Shown here one piece after another: positions 40,007-64,000 of a DNA stretch of 64,000 nucleotides. The stretch's first letter is position 1. Every line of letters begins with the position of its first letter. Under the pieces are notes generated by a model. The model saw only the letters and a list, made by a program, of their open reading frames with translations, did no database searches and was not told where the DNA came from. Both the position numbers and the translations under genes were made by a program. Location of the stretch: IMG/VR virus record IMGVR_UViG_3300025162_000016, positions 248,001-312,000 of that record. One strand, written 5' to 3'.

Positions 40007-40026
40007 CTCTATTTGATTTTACAGTA

Positions 40027-40100: not shown

Positions 40101-40107
40101 ATTTTAT

Positions 40108-46317: not shown

Positions 46318-47022
46318 TTAACGCCGAGGTTTACGCCGAGGTTTACGTTTTGGAACATATCCAAACTCATGTACACTATCTCCACTACTATATAACTCTT
46401 TCGCCGTAACCGTAAGACTTAATATTTTATAATTACCGTTGACGTGATTCTTCCCATGCTCAATAGCATAATCTAAATTCAACGTAACCCAATCGCCGGG
46501 ATTTATTTTTAATTTATTCTTTTTATGCTTCTCTACTATTATTTTTATATCGTTGTTTAATTTATCAAGATATTCCTGTTTATTATATTTCATTTTTCTA
46601 AACACATCATTTTCCTTTGAATCTTTCATTGGTGGAAATCCATATTCAATAAAATATTTCCTTAACTTATTATAATATCTGATTTTATCTTCGATTTCTG
46701 AATGGATATTTGGCACTGCTCTATATATCTTCACCTCTGCATTCGGTTTATTTCGATAGAATTGCATCATACTAACACTATTCTTATCTCTATCATCGCC
46801 GCCGTTATCTCCATAACATCTGGCGGCATTTTTCGAATAAATGCCAAATTCGTCATCAGGATATATTTTAGTCAAATCATACAGTGGCGCACTACTCGTT
46901 TTGCCCGGTGCGGTATGTGGGCCTCTATAATCCTCCTGTTCCTTTATCATTTCATCCGGCTTCTCTGTTAGTGGTTTAGACTGATTGCTCATCTCCATCA
47001 ATATATCTTTTAACTTAATCAT
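46318..47022 (-). CDS. Putative R-S-E type ADP-ribosyltransferase-fold protein with MIKLKDIL N-terminus
   Basis: IYRAVP...INPGDWVT..YA..HG...GDSVHEFGY. Confidence 0.5.
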   Translation of the reverse strand: MIKLKDILMEMSNQSKPLTEKPDEMIKEQEDYRGPHTAPGKTSSAPLYDLTKIYPDDEFGIYSKNAARCYGDNGGDDRDKNSVSMMQFYRNKPNAEVKIYRAVPNIHSEIEDKIRYYNKLRKYFIEYGFPPMKDSKENDVFRKMKYNKQEYLDKLNNDIKIIVEKHKKNKLKINPGDWVTLNLDYAIEHGKNHVNGNYKILSLTVTAKELYSSGDSVHEFGYVPKRKPRRKPRR

Positions 47023-47768
47023 ATTTTATTCCAATAATTCGCTAGTTTAGATAACATTTTATTTTTCAATTTTGGATTCTTATTAAACACTCCTCTTTCA
47101 TACCGGCTAAATATTTTGGAATGTCTGATCGACTCACTAAAAGATATATCCGGATATTTTAACTTAATATGCTTCAATTCATTATTTAATTGCGATACGT
47201 AAGCATGTATCTCTGATTTCTGAGTTAAATAGTTATTATACCATTCTTGTTCATTCTCATTTCGGGCATTTCCTTTAGAAGAAATTTGATATAATTTTTG
47301 AATAAATTTAACTAAATGTACCGCCTCATGATGAGCTAACTCCTCAATATAATCCCGGTGTATTAAAATATTATTTACGGAATATACCGGATTAATTTGT
47401 AAATAAATCTCAATTGGATTACGATACAAATCAACGACGGCTCCATTTATTATAATATCTTCTCTTTTATTTTCCAATGCTAATAAAACATCAACTCTTT
47501 GTTCTTTTTCAATATTTAAATCAACCTCATGTTCTTTAATAATAAAAGAACTTCCATCGTCAATCTGTTTTTTAAAATATGTTTTATCTCCCGATAGAAT
47601 ATCCTCAATGCTATTATCTTTGTCCTTTACTTCTTCTAATAATTCTAGCCAGCAATTGAATATTTTATTGGAAATATATTGATGAAGCCGGTGATCACTA
47701 TAACCAGAATTAGATTCGGTTAATATTAACCACACCCCCTCACTCAATATATCTTTTAACTTAATCAT
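47019..47768 (-). CDS. Hypothetical protein with HExxH motif and MIKLKDIL N-terminus
   Basis: AHHEAVH, E..AY; internal ATG at 47768 lies just past the IS right end. Confidence 0.55.
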   Translation of the reverse strand: MIKLKDILSEGVWLILTESNSGYSDHRLHQYISNKIFNCWLELLEEVKDKDNSIEDILSGDKTYFKKQIDDGSSFIIKEHEVDLNIEKEQRVDVLLALENKREDIIINGAVVDLYRNPIEIYLQINPVYSVNNILIHRDYIEELAHHEAVHLVKFIQKLYQISSKGNARNENEQEWYNNYLTQKSEIHAYVSQLNNELKHIKLKYPDISFSESIRHSKIFSRYERGVFNKNPKLKNKMLSKLANYWNKI

Positions 47769-47774
47769 ATTAAG

Positions 47775-49112
47775 ATGAACTACCCACCCTCTAAAGAGAG
47801 TGGGTTTCCGTTCCAACCAATTGCCCATTGTTTCCAATAGGTCTTACATCAGGACAAACGGCTAACCCAGTCGTTCCGACTGTTAAATTTAATCCTTGTT
47901 TTAGGATATTCAGAGATGCATTTAAATCTCTATCGTGTTTGTAGTTACATTTTGGACAATTCCACTCTCTATCTTTAAGTGTTAAATCATCTTTAATATA
48001 TCCACAGTTACTACAAGTTTTACTGGATGGGAAGTATCTATCAATTTTAATGACTTTTCTTCCATACCATTCACTTTTATAACATATCTGTCTTACTAAT
48101 TCTGACCAAGAACAATCTCCAATGGATTTAGCATATCTATGATCTCCCATCATATTTTTTACGGACAAATCTTCAAGTATAAGAGTTTGGTTTTCGCTCA
48201 CTAACTTGTGAGATATTTGATGTAAATGATTACTACGAATATTGGCAATTTTAACGTGGAGTTTTCCGAGTTTTAACCTTGCTTTAATTCTCCCGATGGA
48301 TTTTTTCCCAGTCCTACTAACTGATTTCTGTCTAATTCTAACTAATTTTTCTAATTGTTTGAGCGGTTTTATGTTTTTAAATCTAATTCCGTCTGAGCAT
48401 ACTACTAAGGATTTAATTCCCAAATCAATCCCAACAGCATTATTTAATTCTGATTTGATTTCAATGTTTTTAGTAACACCAATACACGCAAAATATTGTC
48501 CTGCTACATTACGACTAATAGTAGCATTTTCAATTGATCCTTCAATTTTACGATGTTGATCGATTTTTATTCCTTCTTTAAATTTGGGAAAATATATTCT
48601 TCCATCTTCTACAGAGACAAATTGTGGTAATCTAAATGATTGTTTACTTCTTCTATTTTTAAATCTTGGATATTTGGATTTTTTCTTAAAGAAACGATTA
48701 AAAGCAGTTTCTAGATGTTTTAAAGAATGTTGGAGTGATTGAGAATTACACTCATTTAACCATTCGGTTTCCGTGTTTGATTTGAGTTTTGTTAACTCTG
48801 CTGACATTTCATTATAATTTAATGATTTTTTAGCAAGTTGTTTTTCTTTTGCATTTAAGTAAAACTTAGTTCGTTTATCTAAAAATAGATTATACACATA
48901 ACGAATACTTCCGAAATGTTTAGACAATAATATCTCTTGTTCCTTTGTAGGATAGATTCTAAATTTATATGTATATTGTCTATTCATTTATACGAAATTT
49001 TGTTTCTCGTATAATACATATCGTTCATTTTCTCAAAACATCAAAATAATTTAAAATATTTTATTGGTCGCCATTCATCCCAAGGTCTAAAGACACTTGG
49101 GTTTTCTGGCGA
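47775..49112 (-). mobile_element. IS200/IS605-family tnpB-only element (TnpB3)
   Basis: Right-end hairpin ending GTAGTTCAT; left-end CCCAAG-GTCTAAAGAC-ACTTGGG hairpin. Confidence 0.8.
47791..48987 (-). CDS. tnpB: RNA-guided endonuclease TnpB (canonical, with Zn finger)
   Basis: YKFRIYPT HTH, GIDLG, LILEDL, SSKTCSNC..CPKC, HDRDLNA. Confidence 0.95.
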   Translation of the reverse strand: MNRQYTYKFRIYPTKEQEILLSKHFGSIRYVYNLFLDKRTKFYLNAKEKQLAKKSLNYNEMSAELTKLKSNTETEWLNECNSQSLQHSLKHLETAFNRFFKKKSKYPRFKNRRSKQSFRLPQFVSVEDGRIYFPKFKEGIKIDQHRKIEGSIENATISRNVAGQYFACIGVTKNIEIKSELNNAVGIDLGIKSLVVCSDGIRFKNIKPLKQLEKLVRIRQKSVSRTGKKSIGRIKARLKLGKLHVKIANIRSNHLHQISHKLVSENQTLILEDLSVKNMMGDHRYAKSIGDCSWSELVRQICYKSEWYGRKVIKIDRYFPSSKTCSNCGYIKDDLTLKDREWNCPKCNYKHDRDLNASLNILKQGLNLTVGTTGLAVCPDVRPIGNNGQLVGTETHSL

Positions 49113-49168
49113 CACAGAGATAAAATAATTTATTGACTTTTATCGCACTCTGTGATACATATATAAAT

Positions 49169-49369
49169 ATGACTATTTCAATTAAAACCGCATCTCGTAA
49201 AGATATTCAGCAGTTCCAACGATGGGTTAAGTTACAACCTTGGTCTGAAATATCTTTTCTCCACGAAACTTACCTCCGAGATGATTGCCGTGAAGAAAAA
49301 TTGAAAATTCTCTTCGCCAAATTCTCCGCTCTACCACTAAATCAACGGTTTCCAGCGGGTGATAGGTGA
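49169..49369 (+). CDS. Small hypothetical protein converging on the array trailer
   Basis: TTGACT-17-TACATA promoter; stop codon lies inside the terminal repeat. Confidence 0.45.
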   Translation: MTISIKTASRKDIQQFQRWVKLQPWSEISFLHETYLRDDCREEKLKILFAKFSALPLNQRFPAGDR

Positions 49370-50344
49370 TATAGTGACTGGTCTGTTCCAGCACTTCACC
49401 GGCGAAGCACCTGCTCGGCAAGGACCGCTACCACGAGGTGGTGATATAGTAACTGGTCTGTTCCAGCACTTCACCATTACCGATGTTTCTTTATAGCATA
49501 TACATATAACGGCGGTGATATAGTAACTGGTCTGTTCCAGCACTTCACCTAGGCGACTGAGTTAGGGGCTTTTCCTATATAGCGGTGGTGATATAGTAAC
49601 TGGTCTGTTCCAGCACTTCACCTGAATATGCATTGCCTCTGGTGCAACAATTCGGATAGGTGATATAGTAACTGGTCTGTTCCAGCACTTCACCCAGATA
49701 GAAGATGATAAACCGGATTCTCTACTGATGGTGATATAGTAACTGGTCTGTTCCAGCACTTCACCTTGAAAGGATACCATAGGAAGGATATGTATTACTC
49801 ATGGTGATATAGTAACTGGTCTGTTCCAGCACTTCACCTAGAGTTTGCTTTTGATGAAAGCCAATATGCTGCGGGTGATATAGTAACTGGTCTGTTCCAG
49901 CACTTCACCTCTTTTTTTATTGCTCTATGAGCAGAGACTTGGCTCTGGTGATATAGTAACTGGTCTGTTCCAGCACTTCACCTCTTTTTTTATTGCTCTA
50001 TGAGCAGAGACTTGGCTCTGGTGATATAGTAACTGGTCTGTTCCAGCACTTCACCGTAGAGTTCAGCACTTGGAATATCCATTACTATGATAGGTGATAT
50101 AGTAACTGGTCTGTTCCAGCACTTCACCCATATTTTCCAGTTGGTTCGGGCAAATCAATCGTGGGTGATATAGTAACTGGTCTGTTCCAGCACTTCACCT
50201 TCTTTACTCCATTCCCAGAAGGCTAATGCGAGCGGTGGTGATATAGTAACTGGTCTGTTCCAGCACTTCACCAAATGCAAGTTATCACTATATTTCGCCA
50301 ACTCGAACGGTGATATAGTAACTGGTCTGTTCCAGCACTTCACC
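49365..50344 (-). CRISPR. CRISPR array: 14 repeats (36 nt, GGTGAAGTGCTGGAACAGACCAGTTACTATATCACC as transcribed), 13 spacers of 35-39 nt
   Basis: Read directly; variant trailer repeat at 49365; spacers 49910-49946 and 49983-50019 identical. Confidence 0.99.
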
Positions 50345-50465
50345 TGTATCCCTCGTAAGTAACGTATTATCAAAGAACTGTGTATCAATTTGCGAGCGGC
50401 AGTGTATTCTATTATCCCCGGTTTGTCAACATCAAATATCATATTTCGTAAGTTCCATATTATCA
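50345..50465 (-). promoter_or_regulatory. CRISPR leader with sigma70 promoter
   Basis: Minus-strand TTGACA-17-TACACT; CCGCTCGCAA motif recurs at ~50390, ~50480 and inverted at ~50514. Confidence 0.85.
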
Positions 50466-50523
50466 GCGAGTTACAAGTTGCGAGCGGCTACGGCATATTT
50501 GACGCCACCTAACCGCTCGCAAA

Positions 50524-52800
50524 TTAACATAAAAGTCCCAGCTCAATATCATAATTAATATGATAGTTATTCAATGCCCACATTGTAATTGGGTCATCGG
50601 CATCGTCCCGAATTTTCTCTAGCGGTTCAATAATTCCGGCATTAAGTAATCGTTGGTGTACATTTCCAAATACCGTTACCGAATTTCTGCTAATATCCGC
50701 ATATCCGAGGGTAATATCTTTAGATTTAATTCTTTCAATGACAGTCGGATCGATTACAACTGTAAATTTTTGAGTTTTTATCAATCGCATTAAATTACCT
50801 ACGGTGCGGAGATTTCCCTTGGAAAAGTTATCTTCAATCCGAGAAATCATATTCCAATTGCTAGTTGTTAACGTGTCTCTCGCTGCCGATGTTCCCATTG
50901 CCGGAATCCATTCATTTTTTTCTAATTTACGAAATACATTAATCGCTCTTTGTGTCGTAGGATTAATAGTTATTGTTCCCTTTCGGATTAATGATTCAGA
51001 AAAACAAAAAACATATACTTTTCCGATTTTAAATTCATTATTCCTATTACATCTTCCGGTGCATTGTTGAAGTGAATCTAAACTGGTTTCTTCTCGATAA
51101 CACCGCTCAAATGATATATCAATACCACATTCTACCATTGAGGTGGCAATTAATATGACCGGTAATTCATCTTTTATTTTTTGTTTTATTAATTCCAATC
51201 TTTTTTCTCTAAACTCCGGTGTCACTCGACTACTCAAATGATAGACATTCCCATTTCCGCTATTCAATAATTTAAATAAAACCTTCGCATTATTAGTGGT
51301 ATTACATACTATTAAAGTAGAATGTTTGTTTTTATATCCATTAGTTATATGCCGACATAATTTACCTAATCCAATAGCTCCCAGATGCGATTTTTTAACC
51401 CGTGTATTTTCTCTCGCCTGAAAATGCTTCCATTCCGTATGTGTAAGCATATTATCCACTACTATATTTTTATGATATAAATCCCAAAAATCAATGGGAG
51501 TCCCGGAACTAAAAATAACGTGAACATTATAATTGTTTACTAATTTTTCTAATAAAAATAACGCATGTGACCATAATTCATATGGCATCGCTTGATGATA
51601 CTCATCAAGAACAATGACCGAATCCGTAAAATGAATGAGTTTCCCTATCGCTGCGGGATGATAAGTAGTCAATGCCTCGAAAAATTGCACGCAAGTAGTA
51701 TACGTTAATGGACCATCTAATCTATTATTATATTTTCGCAACCGCCAATCTGTAAACTGAACCATAGAATGATGCTCGTTAATAACCCCTACCTGATACT
51801 CTCCCGGTAACAAAAGAGATTCTTTTGCTTTACCAACAAGTTGATTGATAACATTAATATATGGGGCCACAATAAATATTCGTTCACACCCATATTTTTT
51901 TGCCATTTTCAATGCCTTTTTATGATTAGCATTGGTTTTACCCGAACCTACCGTACCATCGTTTTTTATCCAAGATGAGATAGATTCCCTATCCGCCGAC
52001 GCATAAAGAAGCTTCCGATCTTTAATTCTTTTACCGGGATTTATTTTACTTAATCCATCATTATATTTATCAAAATTTTCAATACGCTCATCCTCTCGAA
52101 GTTTATATGGCTCAGGTAGCACATATCCATCATTACGAAATTGATTGGTGTCGGCGTGATCAGCAGACACCATGCAGGAAAAACACTCTGATATATCATG
52201 CCAATCAACATTTTTAATATTAATGTTATACCCAACATCCGGCATTGAATCCGTAATAATTATATCTTCTTTATGTAGTTGTTCCCATATAATAAGATTA
52301 GCATCTACATAATCTCTTATACGATAATCCCGCCATTTTTCTTTAAGATGTATTTTGGTCGGCGATAACATTTGTGACGGATTAACAAGAGTAATTTTAG
52401 TTAATTCTTCCCAATCTATATAACCAATATGATGAGCCAATATCAGCCACGCTGCTAAAAGATAATATAATTCATTGGTTCGTTCATATTCCTTAATACA
52501 ATGCGATACTCCTGCATCAACATGGTTAAGCATTGACGTATCGCTTTCGCTTGATTGTGAAAGAATTGCTTGACATTCCGGCATCAATTTTCCCAAATCA
52601 TGCCATTCTGTAGCAGTTTCAAGTATTTTCCGATAGAAATTTACCATTTTTCTATTCTTATAATGACGAAATCTACGATCAAACTCCCGCAAGGCGTTAT
52701 TACGTACCGCATGAATGTGATCCCGATATAATTGCGGAGCAACTGTACGGTTCGATGCGTTCACCTGATAACCGGAATGGGCAAAATTTTCTGTCAGCAT
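50524..52800 (-). CDS. cas3: Cas3 helicase-nuclease (HD + SF2)
   Basis: DH, WHDLGK, NH..AG, AHH, SADH; GSGKT, APYINVINQ, DEYH, SGT, NT, ATSMVECGID, QCTGRCNR. Confidence 0.93.
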   Translation of the reverse strand: MLTENFAHSGYQVNASNRTVAPQLYRDHIHAVRNNALREFDRRFRHYKNRKMVNFYRKILETATEWHDLGKLMPECQAILSQSSESDTSMLNHVDAGVSHCIKEYERTNELYYLLAAWLILAHHIGYIDWEELTKITLVNPSQMLSPTKIHLKEKWRDYRIRDYVDANLIIWEQLHKEDIIITDSMPDVGYNINIKNVDWHDISECFSCMVSADHADTNQFRNDGYVLPEPYKLREDERIENFDKYNDGLSKINPGKRIKDRKLLYASADRESISSWIKNDGTVGSGKTNANHKKALKMAKKYGCERIFIVAPYINVINQLVGKAKESLLLPGEYQVGVINEHHSMVQFTDWRLRKYNNRLDGPLTYTTCVQFFEALTTYHPAAIGKLIHFTDSVIVLDEYHQAMPYELWSHALFLLEKLVNNYNVHVIFSSGTPIDFWDLYHKNIVVDNMLTHTEWKHFQARENTRVKKSHLGAIGLGKLCRHITNGYKNKHSTLIVCNTTNNAKVLFKLLNSGNGNVYHLSSRVTPEFREKRLELIKQKIKDELPVILIATSMVECGIDISFERCYREETSLDSLQQCTGRCNRNNEFKIGKVYVFCFSESLIRKGTITINPTTQRAINVFRKLEKNEWIPAMGTSAARDTLTTSNWNMISRIEDNFSKGNLRTVGNLMRLIKTQKFTVVIDPTVIERIKSKDITLGYADISRNSVTVFGNVHQRLLNAGIIEPLEKIRDDADDPITMWALNNYHINYDIELGLLC

Positions 52801-52916
52801 TTTTTAGCTTAACTTTTTTCCTCCGCAAAGTCAATATTTTATTCGGTTTTTTGGATCAATCGATTTTCCCTAAAATAAATCTTGCTTTTTTTCGACAATA
52901 GTGTTAGGTTAACACC
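52801..52916. promoter_or_regulatory. Back-to-back sigma70 promoters for cas3 and cas12, both (near-)leaderless
   Basis: Plus TTGCTT-17-TAGGTT, 6 nt before the ATG; minus TTGACT-17-TAAGCT, 5 nt before the ATG. Confidence 0.75.
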
Positions 52917-55900
52917 ATGACAAAAGAAAAAATCAAAAAAACCAAAAAGGCAAAAGTAGAAAAAGACTCCGTAACACGGGCGGGTATTTTGCGGATATTG
53001 TTGAATCCAGATCAACATCAAGAACTCGATACTCTCATCTCTGACCACCAAGAGGCTGCTAGAGAAATTCAGACTGCGACATATAAATTATCTGGACTAA
53101 AGCTATATGACAAAACCAACAACATGGTGGTCGATGGTAGCAAAGCAACCCCCGAAGAACAAGAGGCTTATTATAAAATAATTAATTGGGAAGGTCAGCC
53201 AATTTCAATTTCCAATCCAATGGTGCGGGCTACATTTAAAAGTATAGCGAAAGTCAAAGAAGATATTCGTCGAAAACAGGAAGAGTATGCTAAGCTTGAA
53301 GAAGCGGATTTGACAAAAATGTCAACCGGTGATGTAAAAAAACATAAAAATGAACTTAGAAAAGCAGCAAACAGAATTAAACATTCTGAAGAGATTCTTC
53401 AGTTTGCCAAATGGCGACTTGCCGACATTTTTCCGCTCCCTCTATCGCACAACTCTCAGTTACATCTTAAAAATAACTATCACCAAAATGTATTCAGTGG
53501 ATTCCATGCACGAGTTAAAGGATGGAACGCATGTGATATTGCGGCTCAAGCAAATTATGCTGAGATAGATAACCGATTAACGGAGTTGTCTTCGGAATTA
53601 TCCGGTGATTATGGGAGCGAAGTTATAACCGATTTGATGGGCTTGTTACAATACACTAAAGAACTAGGAGAAGGATACACGGATACTTCTTATTTGAATT
53701 ATAAATTTTTATCGTTTTTTAAGGAATGCTGGCGACCCAATGCAATTGCTAATAACACCGGATTGCTAGAAGGATTTTGGCTGGCAAATAATAAACACAC
53801 CAATAAAAAAAATCAAGTTGCTTATTCTTTCAATCCAAAAATTAGTGAAGAATTGTTCCGACGAAGAAGTTTATGGGAATCTGATAAATGCCTTTTGTCT
53901 GATCCAAGATTTGAAAAATATGTTGAATTATTTGATAAACATGGTCGTTATCGTAAAGGAGCTTCCCTTACTTTAATTTCAAAAGAATCTCCCATTCCAA
54001 TCGGTTTCTCAATGGATCGCAATGCGGCTAAATTAGTCCGTATAGATAATGATACCGCCAATCGTCAATTAACCATTACTATCGAACTTCCCAATAAAGA
54101 AGAACGTTCTTATGTAGCTGCGTATGGACGTAAACATGAAACTAAATGTTATTATAATGGGCTTACAACAAGATTACCTCGTAGTGAGAAGGAGTTGCTT
54201 GCATTAGCCAAAGCAGAAAATCGTGAACTCACGGACAAAGAAATACATGAGGCATCACTTGAAAAGTGTTATATTTTTGAATATGCCCGAGCCGGTAAAA
54301 TACCGGTGTTTGCTGTCGTAAAAACATTATATTTTCGACGCAACCCGTCTAATGGTGAATATTATGTTATTCTTCCAACTAATATTTTTGTTGAATATCA
54401 CGCCAATAATGAATTCAATTCCAAGGAATTATTCAAAATTAGATCGGAGCTCCAAAAGGCATGGGATGAAGTTCGCACGCCTAAACGTAATGTTCAAAGC
54501 TGTGTTTTGGATAAAGACCTAAGTAAACGTTTTGCCGGTAGAACTTTGAAATATGCGGGAATAGACCTTGGATATAGTAATCCATATACGGTTAGTTATT
54601 ATAACGTGGTGGGAACAGAAGAAGGTATTCAAATCAAAGAAACGGGAAATGAAATTGTTTCTACGGTTTTTAATGAACAGTATATTCAACTCAAAGGGAA
54701 TATATACCAACTTATAAATATCATTCGTGCCTCCCGTCGATACTTACAAGAGAGCGGTGAATTAAAGCTAAGTAAAGATGATATTAAAAGTTTTGATCAA
54801 CTCATGGAGTTACTCCCATCCGAACAACGAATTACTATCGATCAATTCATTAAAGATATTAAAAAAGCAAAACAAGAGGGAAAGTTAATACGAGACATTA
54901 AAGGAAAACTCCCGGTTGAAGGGAAAAAGAAAGAATATTGGGTTATCAGTAATTTAATGTATGTTATTACTCAAACAATGAATGGTATTCGGGGAAATAG
55001 AGATTCTAATAATCATCTCACCGAGAAGAAAAATTGGTTGTCGGCTCCCCCATTAATTGAATTGATTGATGCTTATTATAATCTTAAAAAAACATTCAAT
55101 GATTCCGGTGATGGAATTAAAATGCTTCCTAAAGATCATGTATATGCCGAAGGAGAAAAACAACGGTGTACTCTAAGAGAAGAAAACTTCTGTAAAGGTA
55201 TTTTAGAGTGGCGGGATAATGTTAAAGATTATTTCATTAAAAAATTATTCTCCCAAATCGCTCACCGCTGTTACGAATTAGGAATCGGTATCGTAGCAAT
55301 GGAGAATCTTGATATAATGGGATCATCTAAAAATACTAAACAAAGTAATCGTATGTTTAATATCTGGCCCAGAGGACAAATGAAAAAATCTGCCGAAGAT
55401 GCGTTTAGTTATATGGGTATATTAATCCAATATGTCGATGAAAATGGAACCAGTCGCCATGATGCCGATTCCGGTATTTATGGTTGTCGTGATGGTGCAA
55501 ATCTATGGCTACCTAATAAAAAATTGCACGCCGATGTAAACGCCTCTCGAATGATCGCTCTACGAGGACTTACTCATCATACTAATCTGTATTGTAGAAG
55601 TTTAACCGAAATAGAAAATGGAAAGTACGTTAATACATATGAATTGTTCGATACCACAAAAAATGACCAAAGTGGAGCGGCAAAACGACTCCGTGGAGCA
55701 GAAACTCTTCTACATGGTTATTCCGCTACCGTATACCAAATCCATACCACAAACACCGGTGCCGGTGTTGCCTTACTACCTGACTTAACTGCAACCGATG
55801 TCATTAAAAATAAAAAAATCACCGCCACAAAAGAAAATACAGCCAAATATTATAAATTAGATAATACTAATACCTACTACCCATGGAGTGTATGTGAAAA

Positions 55901-55928
55901 ACTTCACAAAAATTGGAAACTATCATAA
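52917..55928 (+). CDS. cas12: Class 2 type V effector (Cas12h/Cas12b-like), 1003 aa
   Basis: RuvC-I GIDLG, RuvC-II VAMENL, GTS..D..SG..G.R, RuvC-III HADVNA..IALRGL.H; adjacent array. Confidence 0.88.
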   Translation: MTKEKIKKTKKAKVEKDSVTRAGILRILLNPDQHQELDTLISDHQEAAREIQTATYKLSGLKLYDKTNNMVVDGSKATPEEQEAYYKIINWEGQPISISNPMVRATFKSIAKVKEDIRRKQEEYAKLEEADLTKMSTGDVKKHKNELRKAANRIKHSEEILQFAKWRLADIFPLPLSHNSQLHLKNNYHQNVFSGFHARVKGWNACDIAAQANYAEIDNRLTELSSELSGDYGSEVITDLMGLLQYTKELGEGYTDTSYLNYKFLSFFKECWRPNAIANNTGLLEGFWLANNKHTNKKNQVAYSFNPKISEELFRRRSLWESDKCLLSDPRFEKYVELFDKHGRYRKGASLTLISKESPIPIGFSMDRNAAKLVRIDNDTANRQLTITIELPNKEERSYVAAYGRKHETKCYYNGLTTRLPRSEKELLALAKAENRELTDKEIHEASLEKCYIFEYARAGKIPVFAVVKTLYFRRNPSNGEYYVILPTNIFVEYHANNEFNSKELFKIRSELQKAWDEVRTPKRNVQSCVLDKDLSKRFAGRTLKYAGIDLGYSNPYTVSYYNVVGTEEGIQIKETGNEIVSTVFNEQYIQLKGNIYQLINIIRASRRYLQESGELKLSKDDIKSFDQLMELLPSEQRITIDQFIKDIKKAKQEGKLIRDIKGKLPVEGKKKEYWVISNLMYVITQTMNGIRGNRDSNNHLTEKKNWLSAPPLIELIDAYYNLKKTFNDSGDGIKMLPKDHVYAEGEKQRCTLREENFCKGILEWRDNVKDYFIKKLFSQIAHRCYELGIGIVAMENLDIMGSSKNTKQSNRMFNIWPRGQMKKSAEDAFSYMGILIQYVDENGTSRHDADSGIYGCRDGANLWLPNKKLHADVNASRMIALRGLTHHTNLYCRSLTEIENGKYVNTYELFDTTKNDQSGAAKRLRGAETLLHGYSATVYQIHTTNTGAGVALLPDLTATDVIKNKKITATKENTAKYYKLDNTNTYYPWSVCEKLHKNWKLS

Positions 55929-55929
55929 T

Positions 55930-56390
55930 CGCCAAATGTTGTAACATATCAGTTATTATATCACCGGCGAACTGTGAACTCTCGCAGAAACAAAAGAAAT
56001 GCTTTCTGCTTGACTTTTTCAAAAATATCGGTATCATACCAATATGAATGAATCATTGGTATGTGGACGGTTAACCGCCCATAAAAAACCTTGTCAAAAT
56101 TAACCCGTTTTTTATATTATATATATATAAAAACATATCTACGTATTCTTAAAGGTGAAGTGCTGGAACAGACCAGTTACTATATCACCGATATAATATC
56201 GGTAACATACCAATATGAATACAAAAACAGATATGAAACAATATGATACCGAAACCCTGTCCCCTCTCATCTATATAGTAAAAAAAATATCCTTACCTAC
56301 ATAAAGATATATCTACATATTCAAAATATAAAAACATATCTACGTATTCTTAAAGGTGAAGTGCTGGAACATATCAGTTACTATACCACC
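55930..56390 (+). CRISPR. Three widely spaced repeat copies after cas12 (55930-55965 degenerate, 56154-56189 perfect, 56355-56390 3 mismatches)
   Basis: Direct comparison with consensus. Confidence 0.8.
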
Positions 56391-57240
56391 CTATATCCCC
56401 CCCCTCCCCCCCCATATCACCAAAAAATAAAATATACCCTTATTCCTTTTTATATTCTATACCCTTCCCCCATCGCTATATGCTATTTTATAAAAACTAA
56501 ATATCTACAATATTAGTAGATTATAGGGTGTATATACGTATATACACGCCTTTTTTATACTATATTAATGTATTTCACCAATAATTTACAAAAATATATC
56601 CATAAATACGTATAAAGAATTATGGCGATAATAGTTTATAAAGCTTATAACGGCAGTGGTTTATATAACATAATATATTGCCGATATATCCTATATTAAT
56701 GATTTTATAAATAATTATAAAAGGATAGGCTGGCGACAAAAAGTTTCATTTAAAACGGGTATTTCACCAATTTATTTTTATAAAAATAAATATTAACTCT
56801 AAGAATGGTATTTCACCAATTTATTTTATAAAAATAATTATTAATTCTAAAAATGGTATTTCACCAATTTATTTTTATAAAATAAATATTAACTCTAAGA
56901 ATGGGTATTTCACCAATTTATTTTTATAAAATAAATATTAACTCTAAGAATGGGTATTTCACCAATTTATTTTTATAAAATAATTAATAACTCTAAGGTT
57001 AGAGTTATTTTTTTTTTTAATAAATCTAAGGTTAGAATTAATCGGTGAAAATACCACTTGACGGGATAACTCTAAGGTTAGAGTTAATGAGAGGAATAAA
57101 TCTAAGGTTAGAGTTGATCGGGATATGGGTATAGTTGTACGTACTGGGAGGGAGAGAGGGAGGGAGGGGAGAGAGCGGGATATTTGGATTGGAAAGATTG
57201 CGGAAAGAATAGCTTGCTTTTTTACGAGGGAGTAGTAAGA
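56390..57240. other. Putative replication origin
   Basis: Gene-free and very AT-rich; C-tract at ~56390-56415 vs G-tract at ~57145-57180; iterons and palindromes. Confidence 0.6.
56757..56997. repeat. Five ~49-bp iteron-like tandem repeats
   Basis: GGTATTTCACCAATTTATTTTTATAAAATAAATATTAACTCTAAGAAT at ~56758, 56807, 56855, 56904, 56953. Confidence 0.92.
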
Positions 57241-57250
57241 TGTAAGGAAT

Positions 57251-57436
57251 ATGATAACTAAATATAAATGTCCTCTATGTGATGGGTCAATGACGGCGAT
57301 ACCGGATAAGAAGGGTGTTATGGTGAAGTGCTATAATGAACCTTGTGATCCACAATGTAAGGAGAATGTCTTTGGACATGGGAAGAATGAAAAAGATGCT
57401 TGGGAAACGGCGTGTGAGAAATATCCGAAGAAATAA
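57251..57436 (+). CDS. Small Zn-ribbon protein
   Basis: CPLCDG...CYNEPC; promoter upstream. Confidence 0.6.
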   Translation: MITKYKCPLCDGSMTAIPDKKGVMVKCYNEPCDPQCKENVFGHGKNEKDAWETACEKYPKK

Positions 57437-57532
57437 AACAATCTGGTTGACAAAAACAAATAAATCGGTATAGTTTGAAGTGTAATAGATAAACACGGTA
57501 AACAAAAAGCAGAATCGAAAGAAACAAAAATT

Positions 57533-58561
57533 ATGGCGCATCGCATCTTTGAGTATGACAGGCAGCAGGGTAAGGAGCAAGCATGGCACGGTAAGACGGT
57601 AATCACGCCGGATTTGACATTGGACAACAATTGGTTGCGGGAATGGGATTTGGTTCCTCGCAAGATTGCGGATTTGGAAAATAACGAAGAATTGCCTTGG
57701 GTGTATCTGCGTTGTTCGGATAATTCGGTTATTCGTGTTGGCCAGCCATATAATCCGGCGACTTTTCAGCCGGTGAACAATGCGGATTTCTTGGATATGA
57801 TTAAGGCCAGCATATCGGGCACACCGCATACGGTGAGTTCAGTAGGTTCCTTGCGCAATCGGGGCCGGGTATTTGTGAGCATTGAATTGATGGGAATGGA
57901 GAAATTCAAGGCGGCGGGCCGGGATTTTGGTGCATTCCTGAATTTCGGTAATGGACATGATAAGTCTTCGGTACTTTGGGTCAATACCAGCAACATTTGT
58001 ACGGTTTGCGACAATACGTTTTCGTGCAATCTGGTATCTGTAGAAAATAAGGTGACTAAGACGGATGATGATAACGTCCGAATCAGCCAGCGGCATACTA
58101 AGAATGTTAAATTGCGGTTGCCGGACATTGCTTCAATGGTAGATAAGGCTATTAGGGTACAGGCGGAATTCAAGCTGGAAATGGACAAGCTAGCTGCAAT
58201 AGCCGTAAGCCGAAACGGAGTTACCCAGCTCTTTGCTGGGTTCATTGGGCGCAATGTATCGGATAAAGCCAAGGGGTTATCAACTAGGGCGGTCAACACG
58301 GTTGCCAAGTTGGATGATTTGTTTGTCAATGGGCGGGGAAACAGGGGTGAAACGTTGGCCGATGCGTTTTCAGCTACCACGGACTTTTACACTCACTTTT
58401 CTTCTGGCGGTGAAAATGTGATGCGACAAATGGTATCGAGCGATTATGGGTCTGGTCAAGCCAACAAAGCAGAATTCTGGAATCTGGTTAGGAATGGGGA
58501 ATTGCGGGAAACAACCAGAGCACGGGGCGAAGAATTGTTAGTGAATACTGCTAAAGATTAG
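57533..58561 (+). CDS. DUF932-family phage/plasmid protein
   Basis: MAH...AWHGK, Y.P..N, GSL..G..VF, N.HD.S, VC.NT. Confidence 0.85.
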   Translation: MAHRIFEYDRQQGKEQAWHGKTVITPDLTLDNNWLREWDLVPRKIADLENNEELPWVYLRCSDNSVIRVGQPYNPATFQPVNNADFLDMIKASISGTPHTVSSVGSLRNRGRVFVSIELMGMEKFKAAGRDFGAFLNFGNGHDKSSVLWVNTSNICTVCDNTFSCNLVSVENKVTKTDDDNVRISQRHTKNVKLRLPDIASMVDKAIRVQAEFKLEMDKLAAIAVSRNGVTQLFAGFIGRNVSDKAKGLSTRAVNTVAKLDDLFVNGRGNRGETLADAFSATTDFYTHFSSGGENVMRQMVSSDYGSGQANKAEFWNLVRNGELRETTRARGEELLVNTAKD

Positions 58562-58644
58562 GGGTGAGGAATCAGGGAGGGAGCCTAAAAACCCCCTCTC
58601 TTTTTTAATTTGACAAAAACAAATAAATCGGTATAATTCTGATA

Positions 58645-58908
58645 ATGAGAAATAAAACATTATATGCAGTGATACATCGTCACGAGTATGGAGCCGGATT
58701 TTATCTTGTTCGGTGTGCTCATGTTCCTAAGAAAGAAGAAGTTATTCAACATCTTGATATTGATATTGCTGATACGTTGGACGAAGAAGAAATAATTATC
58801 GAAGAAATTATTTCAAAAGAAGCGGTAGAAATCCCTGAACCGGATGGCACTGAGGGACAAGACCGAAAGAGCTATACCGATACACAAGACCGTAAAAATT
58901 ATTACTGA
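58645..58908 (+). CDS. Hypothetical protein
   Basis: Leaderless promoter TTGACA...TATAAT. Confidence 0.6.
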   Translation: MRNKTLYAVIHRHEYGAGFYLVRCAHVPKKEEVIQHLDIDIADTLDEEEIIIEEIISKEAVEIPEPDGTEGQDRKSYTDTQDRKNYY

Positions 58909-59082
58909 TTTCGCTTGACTTTTTTTGGTCAATCGGTATAGTGTTATCTGCTCTCTCTCGGTATAGTGCCGGGAGGGGCATTTTTTATTTATTCACCGGC
59001 AACAATTCTAAGGTTAGAGTTGATCAACTGTGGGGGGGGGATATGATTTCGTTTGACTTTTGCATGTTCTGGAATATGCAAT

Positions 59083-59198
59083 AGTGAAGTGCTGGAACAG
59101 ACCAGACACTATATCACTAAAAAATGAAACTTTGTAGTTGATAATTTTGAATAAACCGGTATAATTTATTTAGTGAAGTGCTGGAACAGACCAGACAC
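59083..59198 (+). repeat. Two solitary repeat copies (59083-59118 full; 59172-59198 partial)
   Basis: 32/36 identity with compensatory AGTGA/TCACT ends. Confidence 0.85.
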
Positions 59199-59294
59199 AA
59201 TAAGACGTAAGACGAAACAAGTAATCATTGACAAAATAAAAAATATCGGTATAGTTAGTAAAGTTAAGCGATTAAACAAATAAAACAATAAAAA

Positions 59295-59747
59295 ATGAAA
59301 AAACAAAATACGGAAGTAGTTGTTGTGACGGAAACGGAAACGGTAACGGCGACAGAAGTTAAGCGTGGGCGTGGGCGGCCCAGGTTTGAAATTAAGAAGC
59401 CGGAGACAAATACGTGGACAATGAATGATGTTAAGGCATTGAACCCTGATGTTTGTGCATTGAGTTTATATCAGCATAAGAATAGGTGGATTGCGGAAAA
59501 TTGGTGTGTGGATAGTGGGGAGCGAATTCCTACGGGCGGGGTGGGAAAGCCATTGACTGTGTTTATTGCGGTTGCGGCATTGCAACGGTCTAAGGCGGCA
59601 AAGAAGGCTGCAAAGACTCGTAAGATGAACAGCAAGCTTCCGGTGGCCCCTCCGGTGGATATGGTTGCGGTTCCGGTGACTGATACGGTTGCGGTGACTG
59701 ATGCGGTTCCGGTGACTGATGCGGTGGAGAATCTGGTGACGGTATAA
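59295..59747 (+). CDS. AT-hook-containing putative DNA-binding protein
   Basis: KRGRGRPR; low-complexity V/T/D tail. Confidence 0.6.
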   Translation: MKKQNTEVVVVTETETVTATEVKRGRGRPRFEIKKPETNTWTMNDVKALNPDVCALSLYQHKNRWIAENWCVDSGERIPTGGVGKPLTVFIAVAALQRSKAAKKAAKTRKMNSKLPVAPPVDMVAVPVTDTVAVTDAVPVTDAVENLVTV

Positions 59748-59832
59748 TGGTTTACAATAAAGACGGCGAGAAAAGTAAAATATTCTTTCCGTCTTTTCTT
59801 GACTTTTTATATTATATTCATACACTATACCC

Positions 59833-60642
59833 ATGAATAAAACAAAATTAAGTTTCACTCACGGCAATGCAAAGTTATCAAAAGACACTGCAATTCTTTC
59901 CCTTCCGGCAGGATATACATGTCCTTTTGCGAACGAGTGCCGGTCTTGTTCGGATAAAGTTACCGGCAAGATTAAAGATGGTCCACATACGCAATTCCGT
60001 TGTTATGCCACAACGGCAGAGTGTTTATTTCCTAACATACGGAGAAGTCGGTGGAATAATTTTGAGCTTATTAAAAACGCTAAAACAACAATCGGTATGG
60101 CAAATTTGATTGAACAATCTTTGGAAGGGAAGAAAAAAATCAAATTGGTTAGATTTCATCAAAGCGGCGATTTCTTTTCGCAAGCATATTTCGATGCTTG
60201 GCTTATGGTTGCTCAAAATCATTCTAATCTAATTTTCTATGGTTATACTAAGGCATTGCCTTATTGGGTAAAGCGATTAGAGGCAATTCCTGCTAATTTT
60301 AGGATTGTAGCCTCAAGGGGTGGGACGCATGACAATTTGATTGAAATGTTTGGGTTGCGGTCGGTGCGGGTTGTGTTATCTGAGCGAGAGGCACGCCGGA
60401 AATGGAAGCTTCAAATTGACCATGATGATTCGCATGTCTGGAATTATGACAAGGACTTTGCCATTGTCATACATGGCATCCAACCGGCGGGAACAAAGGC
60501 TAGTAAAGCATGGCAGAAAATTAAAACGCATGGCAAAGGTGGATATAAAGCCAAATATTTTGGTGACAAGAAAGTTAAAAAGCAGAATAGTGCAGAAGGC
60601 TGGAAAGTTAAACGAGTTTTTGCCGATAAAATAGCGGCATAA
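59833..60642 (+). CDS. Gene product 88 (GP88)-like protein
   Basis: GNAKL, LSLPAG.TCP.A..C, CYA, RFHQSGDF, YGYTK. Confidence 0.75.
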   Translation: MNKTKLSFTHGNAKLSKDTAILSLPAGYTCPFANECRSCSDKVTGKIKDGPHTQFRCYATTAECLFPNIRRSRWNNFELIKNAKTTIGMANLIEQSLEGKKKIKLVRFHQSGDFFSQAYFDAWLMVAQNHSNLIFYGYTKALPYWVKRLEAIPANFRIVASRGGTHDNLIEMFGLRSVRVVLSEREARRKWKLQIDHDDSHVWNYDKDFAIVIHGIQPAGTKASKAWQKIKTHGKGGYKAKYFGDKKVKKQNSAEGWKVKRVFADKIAA

Positions 60643-60693
60643 AAAACACTAAATACCGTTGACTTTAATCAAGTTAACGGTATTCTTTTATTT

Positions 60694-60882
60694 ATGAGAA
60701 CAATACTTGGTCCCGGTGCAAAGTGCCGGGGATATGTTAAAGAGACTGCTAATGGTAAGGAATTGCTTTCTTCTGGCGGTACCTTACTGGGATACTATAA
60801 TGAAGATACTGATCAAACACTTGAGCCAGGGGGAAACTTGTATTCCTATGGTGATTGTCTTATCGAATTGCTTGAAGATTAA
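60694..60882 (+). CDS. Small hypothetical protein
   Basis: Leaderless promoter; G.LLGYY repeat-like sequence. Confidence 0.6.
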   Translation: MRTILGPGAKCRGYVKETANGKELLSSGGTLLGYYNEDTDQTLEPGGNLYSYGDCLIELLED

Positions 60883-60898
60883 TGTTAACACTATGAAC

Positions 60899-61210
60899 AT
60901 GAATAATAGAGTTACCCTACAGCGAACAATATTTACTAATTGGAACACCCAAAATCAGACTTACGGATACCGTGCGTATGATGATCAAGGGCAAACGTAC
61001 GGGAATTGTTTTTCTCTTTTGCAAATGAATTTGCCGGATGATCAATTCTTTAGATTGGTTTATTCGCAGTGTGATGAAATGGTGGCGGCAATGGTAGATT
61101 CCTGTTATGAGAATGCGCTTGGAATTGAAATTGATGGGGACGATAAATCGTATGAATGGGTGAAAGAAACACTTGCAAAAGAGACAGAAATCAGTAATAT
61201 GACGGTATAA
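60899..61210 (+). CDS. Hypothetical protein (start at MNNRV or slightly upstream)
   Basis: 3' part of ORF 60707-61210. Confidence 0.55.
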   Translation: MNNRVTLQRTIFTNWNTQNQTYGYRAYDDQGQTYGNCFSLLQMNLPDDQFFRLVYSQCDEMVAAMVDSCYENALGIEIDGDDKSYEWVKETLAKETEISNMTV

Positions 61211-61223
61211 GAATAATAAAAAC

Positions 61224-61529
61224 ATGAAAATTACATTGAATCAAGCATATCGGTTATTGGAAGATTGTTCGGCGGTTATTTGGGCGGATTATTTTCTTAC
61301 ATTCCCAGCATTGCAAGATGAGGATAATGAGCCAAAAATGTTTTTGTCCTTAGACTCTACGGATGAACACGGGAAAGTGTTTCTGGTGGAATTCTATCGA
61401 CAAGATAATCAAGAAGTTAAAGCGATTGGGAATTCTTTATTTCTCACGGATACAACGGGTGAAGAAATTCAACTAACATTATTGCATGCAATGAACACGG
61501 AAATTTATTTGGATGGAAAACCGGATTAA
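61224..61529 (+). CDS. Hypothetical protein
   Basis: Operonic; terminator at ~61543-61572. Confidence 0.6.
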   Translation: MKITLNQAYRLLEDCSAVIWADYFLTFPALQDEDNEPKMFLSLDSTDEHGKVFLVEFYRQDNQEVKAIGNSLFLTDTTGEEIQLTLLHAMNTEIYLDGKPD

Positions 61530-61609
61530 TTAAATCTATTAGTTTCCCGTCTATAACAGGGCGGGGAACTAAGTCTTGACAAAACAGAAATGTAGTATAT
61601 TATCCTAAT

Positions 61610-61822
61610 ATGATTATTAACAAAATTACCTATGGGTTTGTAGTTCAACAATGGGATACAGAAAAAAAACAATGGGTTGGACAAGACTTTGTTGCCGGGG
61701 ACGTGGTTGAATTTGAAGATGAAACGGGGGATATGATTGATGATGCGGAAATGGAAGAAATCGAGAGCAAGCCAGCATTATCATTTAAAATGGTTCAACC
61801 AGAAAACGAAGCAAAGGCTTGA
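61610..61822 (+). CDS. Hypothetical protein
   Basis: Own promoter near 61577. Confidence 0.6.
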   Translation: MIINKITYGFVVQQWDTEKKQWVGQDFVAGDVVEFEDETGDMIDDAEMEEIESKPALSFKMVQPENEAKA

Positions 61823-61894
61823 CAATTCCAACTAAAGCAGTATAATTTAAGTCGGTGGTTGCATGTTCTGGAATATGTGCTATATATGATAGAC

Positions 61895-62120
61895 AGTGAA
61901 GTGCTGGAACAGACCAGTTACTATATCACTTTATGTTGTTATCTTTTTTAAATTTATCCCTTGTGAATAAATCTAAGGTTAGAGTTAAAATAACTTGCAT
62001 GTTTCGGGGATAAGTGCTATATATGATAGACAGTGAAGTGCTGGAACAGACCAGTCACTAAAACACTGGGAATATGTGCTACTGTATGCGATAATGAAGT
62101 GCTGGAACAAACCGACATTG
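61895..62120 (+). repeat. Three repeat copies (61895-61930, 62032-62067, partial 62093-62120), the first two behind TTGCAT...TATATA promoter-like units
   Basis: 34/36 and 31/36 identity to consensus. Confidence 0.88.
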
Positions 62121-62153
62121 AAAATAGTTGACTTTTGATGGTGTATCGGTATA

Positions 62154-62804
62154 ATGAGCAAGATGAAACAAATTGAAGTTGAATTCAAAACTAATGCCAA
62201 TGGCACCGGGATGCAATTTTTCCGGCAAATTAAAAAAGGTTTTACCCCTAAAGGTAAAGCTGTATACATATATGAACGTATTCATGCGATTGGAGATAAA
62301 GAAGGGGAAACATTTGGATTTGAAGTTATTGCGCCTTCGATAAAGAAGGCAGGAACGTATTCGTTACCTGGTGGCAAATCAATTACGTATGCTGAGGATT
62401 TTGAGGAATATCCTGGGGCGTCTAAGTTTGGAATATCAGCCTGGTCGTATCCCGCTTATCAAGCTGGCGGGGCACGATGGAAATTTGAACAGCTTACAAA
62501 AGAACTAATAGAAATTGAAGAAATCGAAGAAACTAATAATATGATTGAAAACGATAATGTAGATACAAATGAAGTGCCGTCTAATGTTACTAAGTCGAGG
62601 GGACGGCCCAAGAATGATCGTCCGTTGCTAAGTATTCCGTCGGGGGAGTTTAGTACAACGGAGCTATGTAAACTAAACAATACTGATTATTCTGTGGCGG
62701 CAGTGTTTTTGAGGGACTGTGAAGCGGCTGGGACGGTAAAGCGAACCCGTACCGAGAGGCGTAATGCTAAGGGGAAGGAAACTCAATTGTTTCAAGTTGT
62801 GTAA
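62154..62804 (+). CDS. Hypothetical protein with AT-hook and C-terminal winged-helix-like region
   Basis: RGRPK motif; TERRNAKGKETQLF. Confidence 0.6.
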   Translation: MSKMKQIEVEFKTNANGTGMQFFRQIKKGFTPKGKAVYIYERIHAIGDKEGETFGFEVIAPSIKKAGTYSLPGGKSITYAEDFEEYPGASKFGISAWSYPAYQAGGARWKFEQLTKELIEIEEIEETNNMIENDNVDTNEVPSNVTKSRGRPKNDRPLLSIPSGEFSTTELCKLNNTDYSVAAVFLRDCEAAGTVKRTRTERRNAKGKETQLFQVV

Positions 62805-62806
62805 AT

Positions 62807-63130
62807 ATGAAATCGAATAAGCCTATCCCTGAAACATATACGAACCGTGTAGCTCAATTTAACAAGACTGAGCAACGATTGCCTAATGTTCCTGTTAAAG
62901 GCAAGGAGCCGGGTTCTACGCTCACGGATACGACCAAAGAAAACCCTTATATGATTGCTCGTCTTAAAGTTCTTAATGACTATAAAGAGGGTAGGCGTAT
63001 TGAAGTGTTGGCAATGGAAAGAGATAATAGAATTGATCACCGGCATTATGAGGAATTCGTTACCGATGTTCTTAGGGTAGCCGGGGATATTCCTTCTCTG
63101 GCTATCCGAAATCGAATCAAAGGAATCTAA
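62807..63130 (+). CDS. Hypothetical protein
   Basis: Followed by a terminator at 63151-63180. Confidence 0.6.
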   Translation: MKSNKPIPETYTNRVAQFNKTEQRLPNVPVKGKEPGSTLTDTTKENPYMIARLKVLNDYKEGRRIEVLAMERDNRIDHRHYEEFVTDVLRVAGDIPSLAIRNRIKGI

Positions 63131-63189
63131 TCTAATCTAATCTAATCTACAAATCCCCTGTCAAGTGACGGGGGATTTTTTATATATTT

Positions 63190-63388
63190 AGTGAATTACT
63201 GGAACAGACCAGTCACTATCAACTCTAAGATTAGAATTAAAACGAATTGCATTTTTTTGAAATTTCTAGTGAATTACTGGAACAGACCAGTCACTAAAAC
63301 ACTACCGGAGAAGGAGTAATAATTTTTTATCACCCTTCTCCGGCATATATGTAGTGACGTGCTGGGATATATCAGTCACTAAAACACT
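63190..63388 (+). repeat. Degenerate three-repeat mini-array (63190, 63268, 63353)
   Basis: CTGGAACAGACCAGTCACT core; gaps of 42 and 49 nt, the second a CCGGAGAAGG/CCTTCTCCGG hairpin. Confidence 0.8.
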
Positions 63389-63644
63389 CAGACTGTACGG
63401 TAAAGGTATCAGCACTTTCCCAACTAAAATGATCTACGATTGCTTTACCGGCAGCATCATCTTGATCAAATGCCAATTTGGGTTCAAAATCCGCTTGTTC
63501 CGCTTTATTCATAGCAAATTTATAATGATACCCATTATCGTAATCATCTTCGGTACAGATTAATTTACAAAAGTAAAAGTCTGGTTCTCCATTACTGTTA
63601 ATCCCGGCTACCATCATCTTTAAGTCAAGCATAAAGTCAAGCAT
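63372..63644 (-). CDS. Hypothetical protein
   Basis: Stop overlaps the repeat copy at 63353. Confidence 0.55.
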   Translation of the reverse strand: MLDFMLDLKMMVAGINSNGEPDFYFCKLICTEDDYDNGYHYKFAMNKAEQADFEPKLAFDQDDAAGKAIVDHFSWESADTFTVQSECFSD

Positions 63645-63734
63645 ATTTTTGTTTTTAATCGGTTAATTGTTTTTTTACTGTGATATGATTATACGGATTT
63701 ACGGATAGGAGTCAACTAATAAATGTATATATTT

Positions 63735-63770
63735 AGTGACGTGCTGGAACAGACCAGTCTCTATATCTCT
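63735..63770 (+). repeat. Solitary degenerate CRISPR repeat
   Basis: 30/36 identity to consensus. Confidence 0.85.
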
Positions 63771-63789
63771 ATATCACTAAATTACTAAA

Positions 63790-63975: not shown

Positions 63976-64000
63976 AATTTTGTTTTTGGTTTAATTGTTT

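Follow-up and report, generated by a model that had tools for sequence, protein, structure and literature searches.

A cas12 gene and a cas3 gene lie side by side, next to a CRISPR array, in a 64,000-nucleotide stretch (the window) of the IMG/VR contig IMGVR_UViG_3300025162_000016 (368,758 bp), window position 1 being contig position 248,001. The reading we favor, with a probability of roughly 0.55, is that the phage carries a type V interference module that is complete in itself and has two protein components, in which Cas12 would form an R-loop or nick and Cas3 would then shred the DNA. All of the parts are present, the active sites of both enzymes are intact, and Cas12 and Cas3 co-occur strictly and have co-evolved. 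The Cas12-Cas3 pairing itself has already been noted computationally twice (PMC10691335, PMC10910872); the window system is a new phage-borne case of this already known, uncharacterized pairing.

The locus comprises a 14-repeat CRISPR array, cas3 on the minus strand, a short gap, and cas12 on the plus strand. The same anatomy, with array and cas3 pointing left and cas12 pointing right, had been given by an earlier first-pass annotation of this DNA, and array detection, open reading frames (ORFs), and profile matches to cas3 and cas12 bear it out. The annotation had also placed tnpB on the left flank, where a true IS605-type TnpB was found at 47791-48987, and had described the gap between the two genes as 116 bp with back-to-back promoters. 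The length is correct, but a promoter consensus scan of the gap gave one weak match on the minus strand and none for cas12. The flanks had been said to hold no cas5/7/8/11 or cas1/2/4, and in agreement with this, a scan with PADLOC and Pfam gave no match to Cas1, -2, -4, -5, -6, -7, -8, or -11 models among the 62 other ORFs of the window. Reading covered about 100 kb of the 369-kb phage contig; no Cascade or adaptation genes were found among 10 ORFs near three further arrays of the same contig or among the called genes of 14 related loci. The genes that mark a type I system (cas5, cas7, and cas8 or a large subunit) are therefore lacking from the window, from the neighborhoods of the other arrays, and from the 14 loci.

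Cas3 matches TIGR01587 (cas3_core) with 103.8 bits against a cut-off of 102.45, the PADLOC Cas3c model at 1e-88, and PF22590; an HD-domain match is also present, that to TIGR01596 falling below its cut-off. The AlphaFold 2 (AF2) model, with a predicted local distance difference test (pLDDT) score of 80.5, superimposes over its full length on type I-C Cas3 (8zns and 8g9u) with template modeling (TM) scores of 0.70-0.73. The HD residues His28, His67-Asp68, His93, His123-His124, and Asp214-His215 are invariant in 10 sequences, and the helicase motifs I (GxGKT), II (DEYH), III (SGT), and VI (QxxGRxNR) are likewise invariant. All of the HD residues and superfamily 2 (SF2) motifs I, II, III, and VI claimed initially are thus present, and the protein has the signature features of Cas3: metal-binding HD His and Asp residues and an SF2 core with these motifs and a C-terminal domain. 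A match to "armadillo repeat" at the C terminus had no aligned stretch and was ignored.

The C terminus of Cas12 is a TnpB-like RuvC domain, with TnpB-related matches below cut-off. Asp550, Glu796, and Asp873 are invariant in seven relatives, in keeping with the earlier description of an intact RuvC D-E-D set; among 40 family members Asp550 and Glu796 are invariant, and Asp873 is kept in at least 90%. The protein is a single large effector with a split RuvC (D...E...D) of TnpB ancestry, as is characteristic of type V. When used alone, the window Cas12 matches only the RuvC part of the Protein Data Bank entries for Cas12-2, Cas12j19, Cas12X, and Cas12o1 and reaches no PADLOC Cas12 model, Cas12h included. 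A family profile built from the 40 members, scored against solved structures, gave expectation (E) values of 4e-69 for Cas12o1, 1e-66 for Cas12X2 (full length), 2.5e-33 for Cas12h1, 4e-24 for Cas12b, 6e-16 for Cas12f, and 3e-8 for Cas12m4a. Foldseek with the AF2 model of Cas12, which has moderate confidence (pLDDT 67.7), returned the same order, with E of about 1e-22 for the Cas12o1 and Cas12X2 structures (TM of 0.40-0.58 for Cas12o1) and E of 2e-18 for Cas12h1. With PADLOC, 26 of the 40 members match Cas12b models, and 15 match Cas12h models. From the profile E values, the Foldseek order, and these matches, the family is assigned to a predicted Cas12b/Cas12h/Cas12o lineage. A protein of 908 residues (P0047) considered as Cas12o1 was rejected as not being Cas12o1.

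A word-index search identified six Cas12 relatives at 24-58% identity and one 98% copy, and when 1.84 billion representative proteins were searched with a profile, 33 clusters passed E <= 1e-30 and 139 passed E <= 1e-10. Genomic context was read for 12 Cas12 relatives with identities from 98% to about 18%, most of the related contigs being short; together with the window, there are 13 distinct Cas12 proteins and 14 loci, two proteins each being found on a second, different contig. The first-pass annotation had asked whether homologs of this Cas12 co-occur with Cas3 elsewhere, and they do: cas3 directly adjoins cas12 in all 14 loci. The Cas3 proteins have 750-790 residues, and the two genes are either divergent, as in the window, or have cas3 upstream in the same direction. 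In an all-against-all comparison of the ORFs of the loci, Cas12 and Cas3 are the only families common to all, and no third conserved gene was found. Identities between pairs of Cas3 proteins and between the corresponding pairs of Cas12 proteins, compared as matrices, are correlated (r = 0.95), and none of 5000 permutations in a Mantel test was as high; inheritance of the pair has therefore been joint since the family arose. Because the HD and helicase motifs of Cas3 and the RuvC residues of Cas12 are conserved, both nucleases are under selection. The initial view of one conserved module without Cascade is upheld by the 14 of 14 linkage, the co-diversification, and the intact active sites in both proteins.

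No relatives of the Cas12 were found in 185,579 bacterial and archaeal species genomes (one genome per species) or, by tblastn, in GenBank phages. Scans of IMG/VR and the Joint Genome Institute metagenomes recovered only the source contig, near-identical copies, and one 58% relative. The neighbors of the pair in the related loci appear phage-like and include homing endonucleases, a class II tRNA synthetase, and ADP-ribosyl enzymes.

The main array lies 180 bp beyond cas3 and has spacers of 35-39 nt. Its repeat reads GGTGATATAGTAACTGGTCTGTTCCAGCACTTCACC on the plus strand and GGTGAAGTGCTGGAACAGACCAGTTACTATATCACC on the minus strand; the chance expectation for this 36-nt repeat is 0. The sole variant copy is that at the 49365 end, the remaining copies being identical, which places the leader at the 50345 end, beside cas3. 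About 50 nt separate the first repeat from a promoter-like site upstream of it, which was identified by consensus match only. With the degenerate end placing the leader by cas3 and the promoter-like site located there, the array is most likely transcribed on the minus strand to give CRISPR RNAs (crRNAs) with the repeat GGUGAAGUGCUGGAACAGACCAGUUACUAUAUCACC. The folded repeat has a terminal 5-bp stem and an inner hairpin with a 6-nt loop. When 10 variants of the 36-nt repeat from different loci are compared, compensatory changes are seen in 9 of the 12 pairs of the hairpin. The locus thus has the adjacent array with a structured repeat that is expected of type V, the array being near cas3 and the hairpin covarying. 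Related 36-nt repeats adjoin the genes in loci L004, L005, and L028; L030 has a two-repeat mini-array just after cas12, with a different, less similar repeat. A match to the repeat core in L014 is a chance match inside a coding region.

Three further arrays with an identical repeat are present on the same contig, at about 9.2 kb and at 331.6-333.8 kb, far from cas12 and cas3; only TnpB and no other Cas genes were found beside them. The four arrays together hold 35 spacers, of which 32 are unique. Neither the main array nor the two L022 arrays has a match in GenBank phages, and a 22-mer of the repeat has 0 copies in the bacterial and archaeal species genomes. Spacers A5 and A6 (window 49910-50019) are identical, as are CD8 and CD15, and CD7 is nearly identical to CD14 (L022 2152-2265 and 2668-2781); array units thus seem to have been duplicated in segments and not newly acquired.

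In type I interference, Cascade normally licenses Cas3, which acts on the displaced non-target strand. In the scheme that we favor, transcription of the arrays (on the minus strand for the main array) would supply crRNAs with the conserved repeat hairpin, and Cas12 would bind them, with no trans-activating crRNA (tracrRNA) expected. The crRNA-guided Cas12 would open an R-loop on foreign double-stranded DNA, and its intact RuvC site would cut or nick the displaced non-target strand. The type I-C-like Cas3 would load on the displaced or nicked strand and would unwind and degrade the target over long distances through its HD nuclease. The phage would thereby destroy competing phages, plasmids, or host DNA beyond repair; in a contest of phage with phage, shredding would presumably be harder to repair than a single cut. 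This two-step reading is preferred because both nuclease sites are kept and because Cas12h1 nicks the strand on which Cas3 acts in type I systems. Cas12h1 is mainly a nickase with a preference for the non-target strand (PMC11830025), and by analogy such nicking would suit a hand-over to Cas3. The Cas12o1 lineage is listed among the Cas12 types that do not need a tracrRNA.

The intergenic regions of the window contain at least 13 solitary full-length copies of the repeat, and a further 3 are located elsewhere on the contig (Table 1); their chance expectation is 0. All share the orientation of the genes that flank them, and several follow closely on sites that resemble promoters or terminators. 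The distance to the next start codon ranges from 18 to 270 nt. A copy directly after the cas12 stop codon, as in the window, is also found in L003, L004, and L006. Comparison of the sequences after the solitary repeats with the cas promoter region gave matches of chance length only, plus one 15-mer that is a duplicated promoter-like box. A reading of these repeats as parts of a tracrRNA was dropped: with the direction of the array fixed from its degenerate end, from the leader promoter, and from the co-directional arrays of L028 and L030, they are same-sense copies and not anti-repeats. They are possibly binding or processing sites for Cas12 or single-guide units.

Repeats also occur in the leaders of the cas genes of two related loci. 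In L005 the 5' leader of cas12 consists of a two-repeat mini-array (5014-5172 and 5400-5435) that follows a TATAAT box. The spacer of this mini-array agrees with the coding strand of the cas12 of the same locus at 29 of 36 positions, the last 19 nt exactly. It might be directed at a competing cas12 allele, or it might be a regulatory guide with a partial match, as has been described for other systems (bioRxiv 10.1101/2023.03.03.530964). The protospacer has a 5' ATTT flank on the coding strand, the sole hint of a T-rich protospacer-adjacent motif (PAM). In L008, where cas3 and cas12 are co-directional, two repeat-like units stand back to back (positions 1-84) directly upstream of the cas3 start.

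Table 1. Features of the Cas12-Cas3 locus, arrays, solitary repeats, and TnpB elements (window positions, unless preceded by the handle of another locus)
Feature	Position	Strand	Remarks
Main CRISPR array	49365-50344	minus	14 repeats of 36 nt, 13 spacers (12 unique)
Array leader	50345-50523	minus	promoter-like site TTGACA-17-TACACT at 50429-50401
cas3	50524-52800	minus	758 aa; HD nuclease, SF2 helicase, C-terminal domain; type I-C-like
cas3-cas12 divergent intergenic region	52801-52916		exactly 116 bp
cas12	52917-55928	plus	1003 aa; predicted Cas12b/h/o lineage; RuvC residues D550, E796, D873
Further array, same contig	L011 2800-3257		7 repeats
Further array, same contig	L022 626-1098		7 repeats
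Further array, same contig	L022 2117-2890		11 repeats
Solitary repeat-like unit	31857-31892	plus	between two plus-strand ORFs
Solitary repeat, 2 mismatches	34075-34110	plus	18 nt upstream of ATG opening a 183-codon ORF
Solitary repeat, 1 mismatch	34812-34847	plus	intergenic
Degenerate solitary repeat	55931-55966	plus	directly 3' of cas12 stop codon
Perfect solitary repeat	56154-56189	plus	preceded by 25-nt box, duplicated at 56330-56354
Solitary repeat, 3 mismatches	56355-56390	plus	
Solitary repeat, 4 mismatches	59083-59118	plus	intergenic
Solitary repeat-like unit	59172-59207	plus	begins 6 nt past TTGATA-16-TATAAT promoter-like site
Solitary repeat, 2 mismatches	61895-61930	plus	intergenic
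Solitary repeat, 5 mismatches	62032-62067	plus	upstream 18 nt common with 61895 copy
Solitary repeat-like unit	63190-63225	plus	just past terminator-like hairpin
Solitary repeat-like unit	63268-63303	plus	
Solitary repeat-like unit, 6 mismatches	63735-63770	plus	
Solitary repeats outside window, same contig	L011 6633-6668; L012 325-360; L023 3201-3236		
TnpB/IS607-type elements	47791-48987; 27644-28819; 30174-31325		beside arrays/solitary repeats
TnpB/IS607-type elements outside window	L011 1242-2318; L011 4696-6536; L023 1613-2788; L003 3340-4965		

The order of action, any physical transfer between Cas12 and Cas3, and what the module targets are inferred here. Several points weigh against two-step interference. 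A search for protospacers, which would have pointed to the targets and the PAM, found none for the 35 spacers. Cas12o1, the closest solved relative, edits DNA alone in human cells (PMC13717751), and Cas3 therefore need not be required for cutting. Approximately 100 kb of the contig was read, and Cascade genes might conceivably lie elsewhere in the phage. The solitary repeats hint at a further role of Cas12 at the RNA level, which the two-step model leaves unexplained.

The last of these points is the starting point of a doubtful alternative, in which Cas12 mainly binds, processes, or regulates RNA at solitary repeats in phage transcripts and Cas3 is a helper that displaces Cas12 or clears R-loops. 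The number and common orientation of the intergenic repeats, the promoter-like sites ahead of several of them, and the repeats in the 5' leaders of cas12 (L005) and cas3 (L008) are in its favor, and stand-alone repeats by cas12a are known regulatory candidates (bioRxiv 10.1101/2023.03.03.530964). However, the conservation of both the RuvC and the HD active sites speaks for cleavage of DNA, the phage has ordinary arrays with many spacers, and the spacing of repeat and start codon is variable. An RNA-level role may possibly coexist with two-step interference as an added function. A double role of this kind, with Cas12 as a stand-in for Cascade that licenses shredding by Cas3 and also as a processor or regulator of phage transcripts through the solitary repeats, including those in the leaders of the cas genes, is a tentative and rather unlikely proposal; if true, it would represent a CRISPR effector wired into phage gene expression.

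Two other explanations leave the cutting to Cas12 or assign Cas3 to another complex, and all three rivals are weaker than two-step interference. It is improbable that Cas3 supplies DNA fragments for priming-like spacer acquisition by host Cas1-Cas2 while Cas12 cuts alone, as Cas12o1 does unaided. The arrays hold 32 different spacers, yet no locus has an adaptation gene, so the spacers must come from somewhere; the absence of the repeat 22-mer and of Cas12 relatives from the 185,579 species genomes leaves no compatible host adaptation system in sight, the duplicated spacers (A5 = A6, CD8 = CD15) indicate array growth by duplication, and the constant linkage and co-evolution are expected of an effector partner. 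The first-pass suggestion of primed acquisition with host Cas1-Cas2 accordingly found no support. Still less probable, to the point of being very unlikely, is that Cas3 serves a Cascade encoded elsewhere in the phage or host and stands beside cas12 incidentally. Cas3 is a full-length type I-C-like enzyme, and the part of the contig covered leaves room for such genes, but the adjacency holds in every locus across deep divergence and two gene orders, no Cas5/7/8/11 match was found in the window ORFs or near the three other arrays, and the 36-nt AT-rich repeat is common to four arrays, the only effector gene beside any of which is cas12.

Current understanding is that Cas3 requires Cascade. Licensing of Cas3 by one Cas12, if real, would show that a class 1 shredder can be fed by a class 2 effector; it would offer a tool of two proteins for making long programmable deletions, and it would account for the retention of both nucleases by phages that fight other phages. 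The window is a complete natural example, with a 369-kb phage, four arrays, and clear relatives, and the question is directly testable. The solitary repeats raise the additional question of a phage using its own CRISPR effector on its own RNAs.

TnpB or IS607-type elements adjoin every array and several of the solitary repeats. Loci L003 and L004 have the same Cas12, and L003 has a resolvase-plus-TnpB element after the first repeat, where the array continues in L004; elements of this type may insert at or near the CRISPR repeat. In L005, cas3 (2515-4777) is split into two overlapping frames of 576 and 168 residues, by either a frameshift or an assembly error; the 26-repeat array and cas12 of this locus are intact. 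In L027 a major-vault-protein-like protein (Vault_3, MVP_shoulder) and a DUF2828/DUF7788 protein (5022-7529 and 1-1207) are encoded just upstream of cas3/cas12.

To the right of cas12, positions 55929 to about 57250 (about 1.3 kb) are non-coding and without ORFs. The stretch contains 4.9 tandem copies of a 49-bp AT-rich unit (56757-56997), followed by several CTCTAAGGTTAGAG-type palindromes (56990-57120), and has C-rich and G-rich tracts at 56398-56420 and 57140-57175. It looks iteron-like. The first-pass annotation had described this flank as non-coding and origin-like; its non-coding nature and iteron-like look stand, but the GC-skew turn located here also coincides with a switch of gene strand and is thus no proof of an origin. 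Rfam gave no match in 47000-64000. The rest of the window resembles a huge phage, with genes for NAD salvage and nucleotide metabolism, RNA ligases, two more TnpB genes, and four tRNA genes. The tRNA genes are clustered at 38137-40184 (Lys-UUU, Leu-UAA, Arg-UCU, and Ile-UAU), and all four tRNAs read A/U-rich codons, in keeping with a huge phage of 36% GC.

The system shares features with several that are known. As in the CasPhi/Cas12j systems of huge phages (Al-Shayeb et al. 2020, PMC7162821), arrays lie near a compact type V effector in a huge phage that lacks cas1/2/4, but the Cas12 lineage is different, and no Cas3 partner for the type V effector was described there. The fold (TM 0.70-0.73) and catalytic motifs of Cas3 are those of type I-C Cascade-Cas3; in contrast to type I-C, no Cas5, Cas7, Cas8, or Cas11 was found, and a single Cas12 takes the RNA-guided role. 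By structure and by profile, this Cas12 is matched best by Cas12o1 (also deposited as Cas12-2, Cas12j19, and Cas12X) and Cas12X2 (8xca, 8wru, 8zqb, and 8zqc). Cas12o1 has been reported with a 36-nt repeat, as in the window system, but identity to the window Cas12 is only about 15%, and Cas12o1 is used as a stand-alone editor. Cas12h1 (type V-H) is of the same lineage and is likewise described without an adaptation module; however, V-H loci are described as an array without other cas genes, whereas here cas3 is present in 14 of 14 loci.

The closest comparisons are with the two reports of Altae-Tran et al., who read Cas12-Cas3 pairs in the same way (PMC10910872, PMC10691335). Literature searches found no mechanistic study, interference test, or test of Cas3 dependence for such a pair, and a type V-Cas3 variant is not mentioned in the searched passages of the 2025 CRISPR classification. 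The "Cas12-Cas3 putative Class-1-2 hybrid" (Altae-Tran et al. Science 2023, PMC10910872) pairs Cas12m with a type I-C-like Cas3, and the purified Cas12 of that system carried a cognate noncoding RNA. As here, the type I-C-like Cas3 is beside Cas12 and an array, and the same idea of interference by Cas3 was put forward. The signature genes of the hybrid encode about 690-740 residues, an effector of about 700 residues that is not known to cleave DNA, whereas the window protein has 1003 residues and an intact RuvC, and its family is far nearer Cas12h (2.5e-33) than Cas12m4a (3e-8). The two are probably independent associations. The "Cas12h variant" (Altae-Tran et al. PNAS 2023, PMC10691335) was described with an active Cas3 (HD and helicase) and an active Cas12. 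It corresponds to the window family in its Cas12b/Cas12h branch, its size of about 900-1000 residues, its predicted active Cas12, its lack of an adaptation module, and its adjoining Cas3 with intact HD and helicase. The phage context, multiple arrays, and solitary repeats found here go beyond that one-paragraph account. Because every feature named there, namely the Cas12b/h branch, Cas3 and Cas12 with intact active sites, and no adaptation module, is found here, the window family is most likely this variant, as matched by description.

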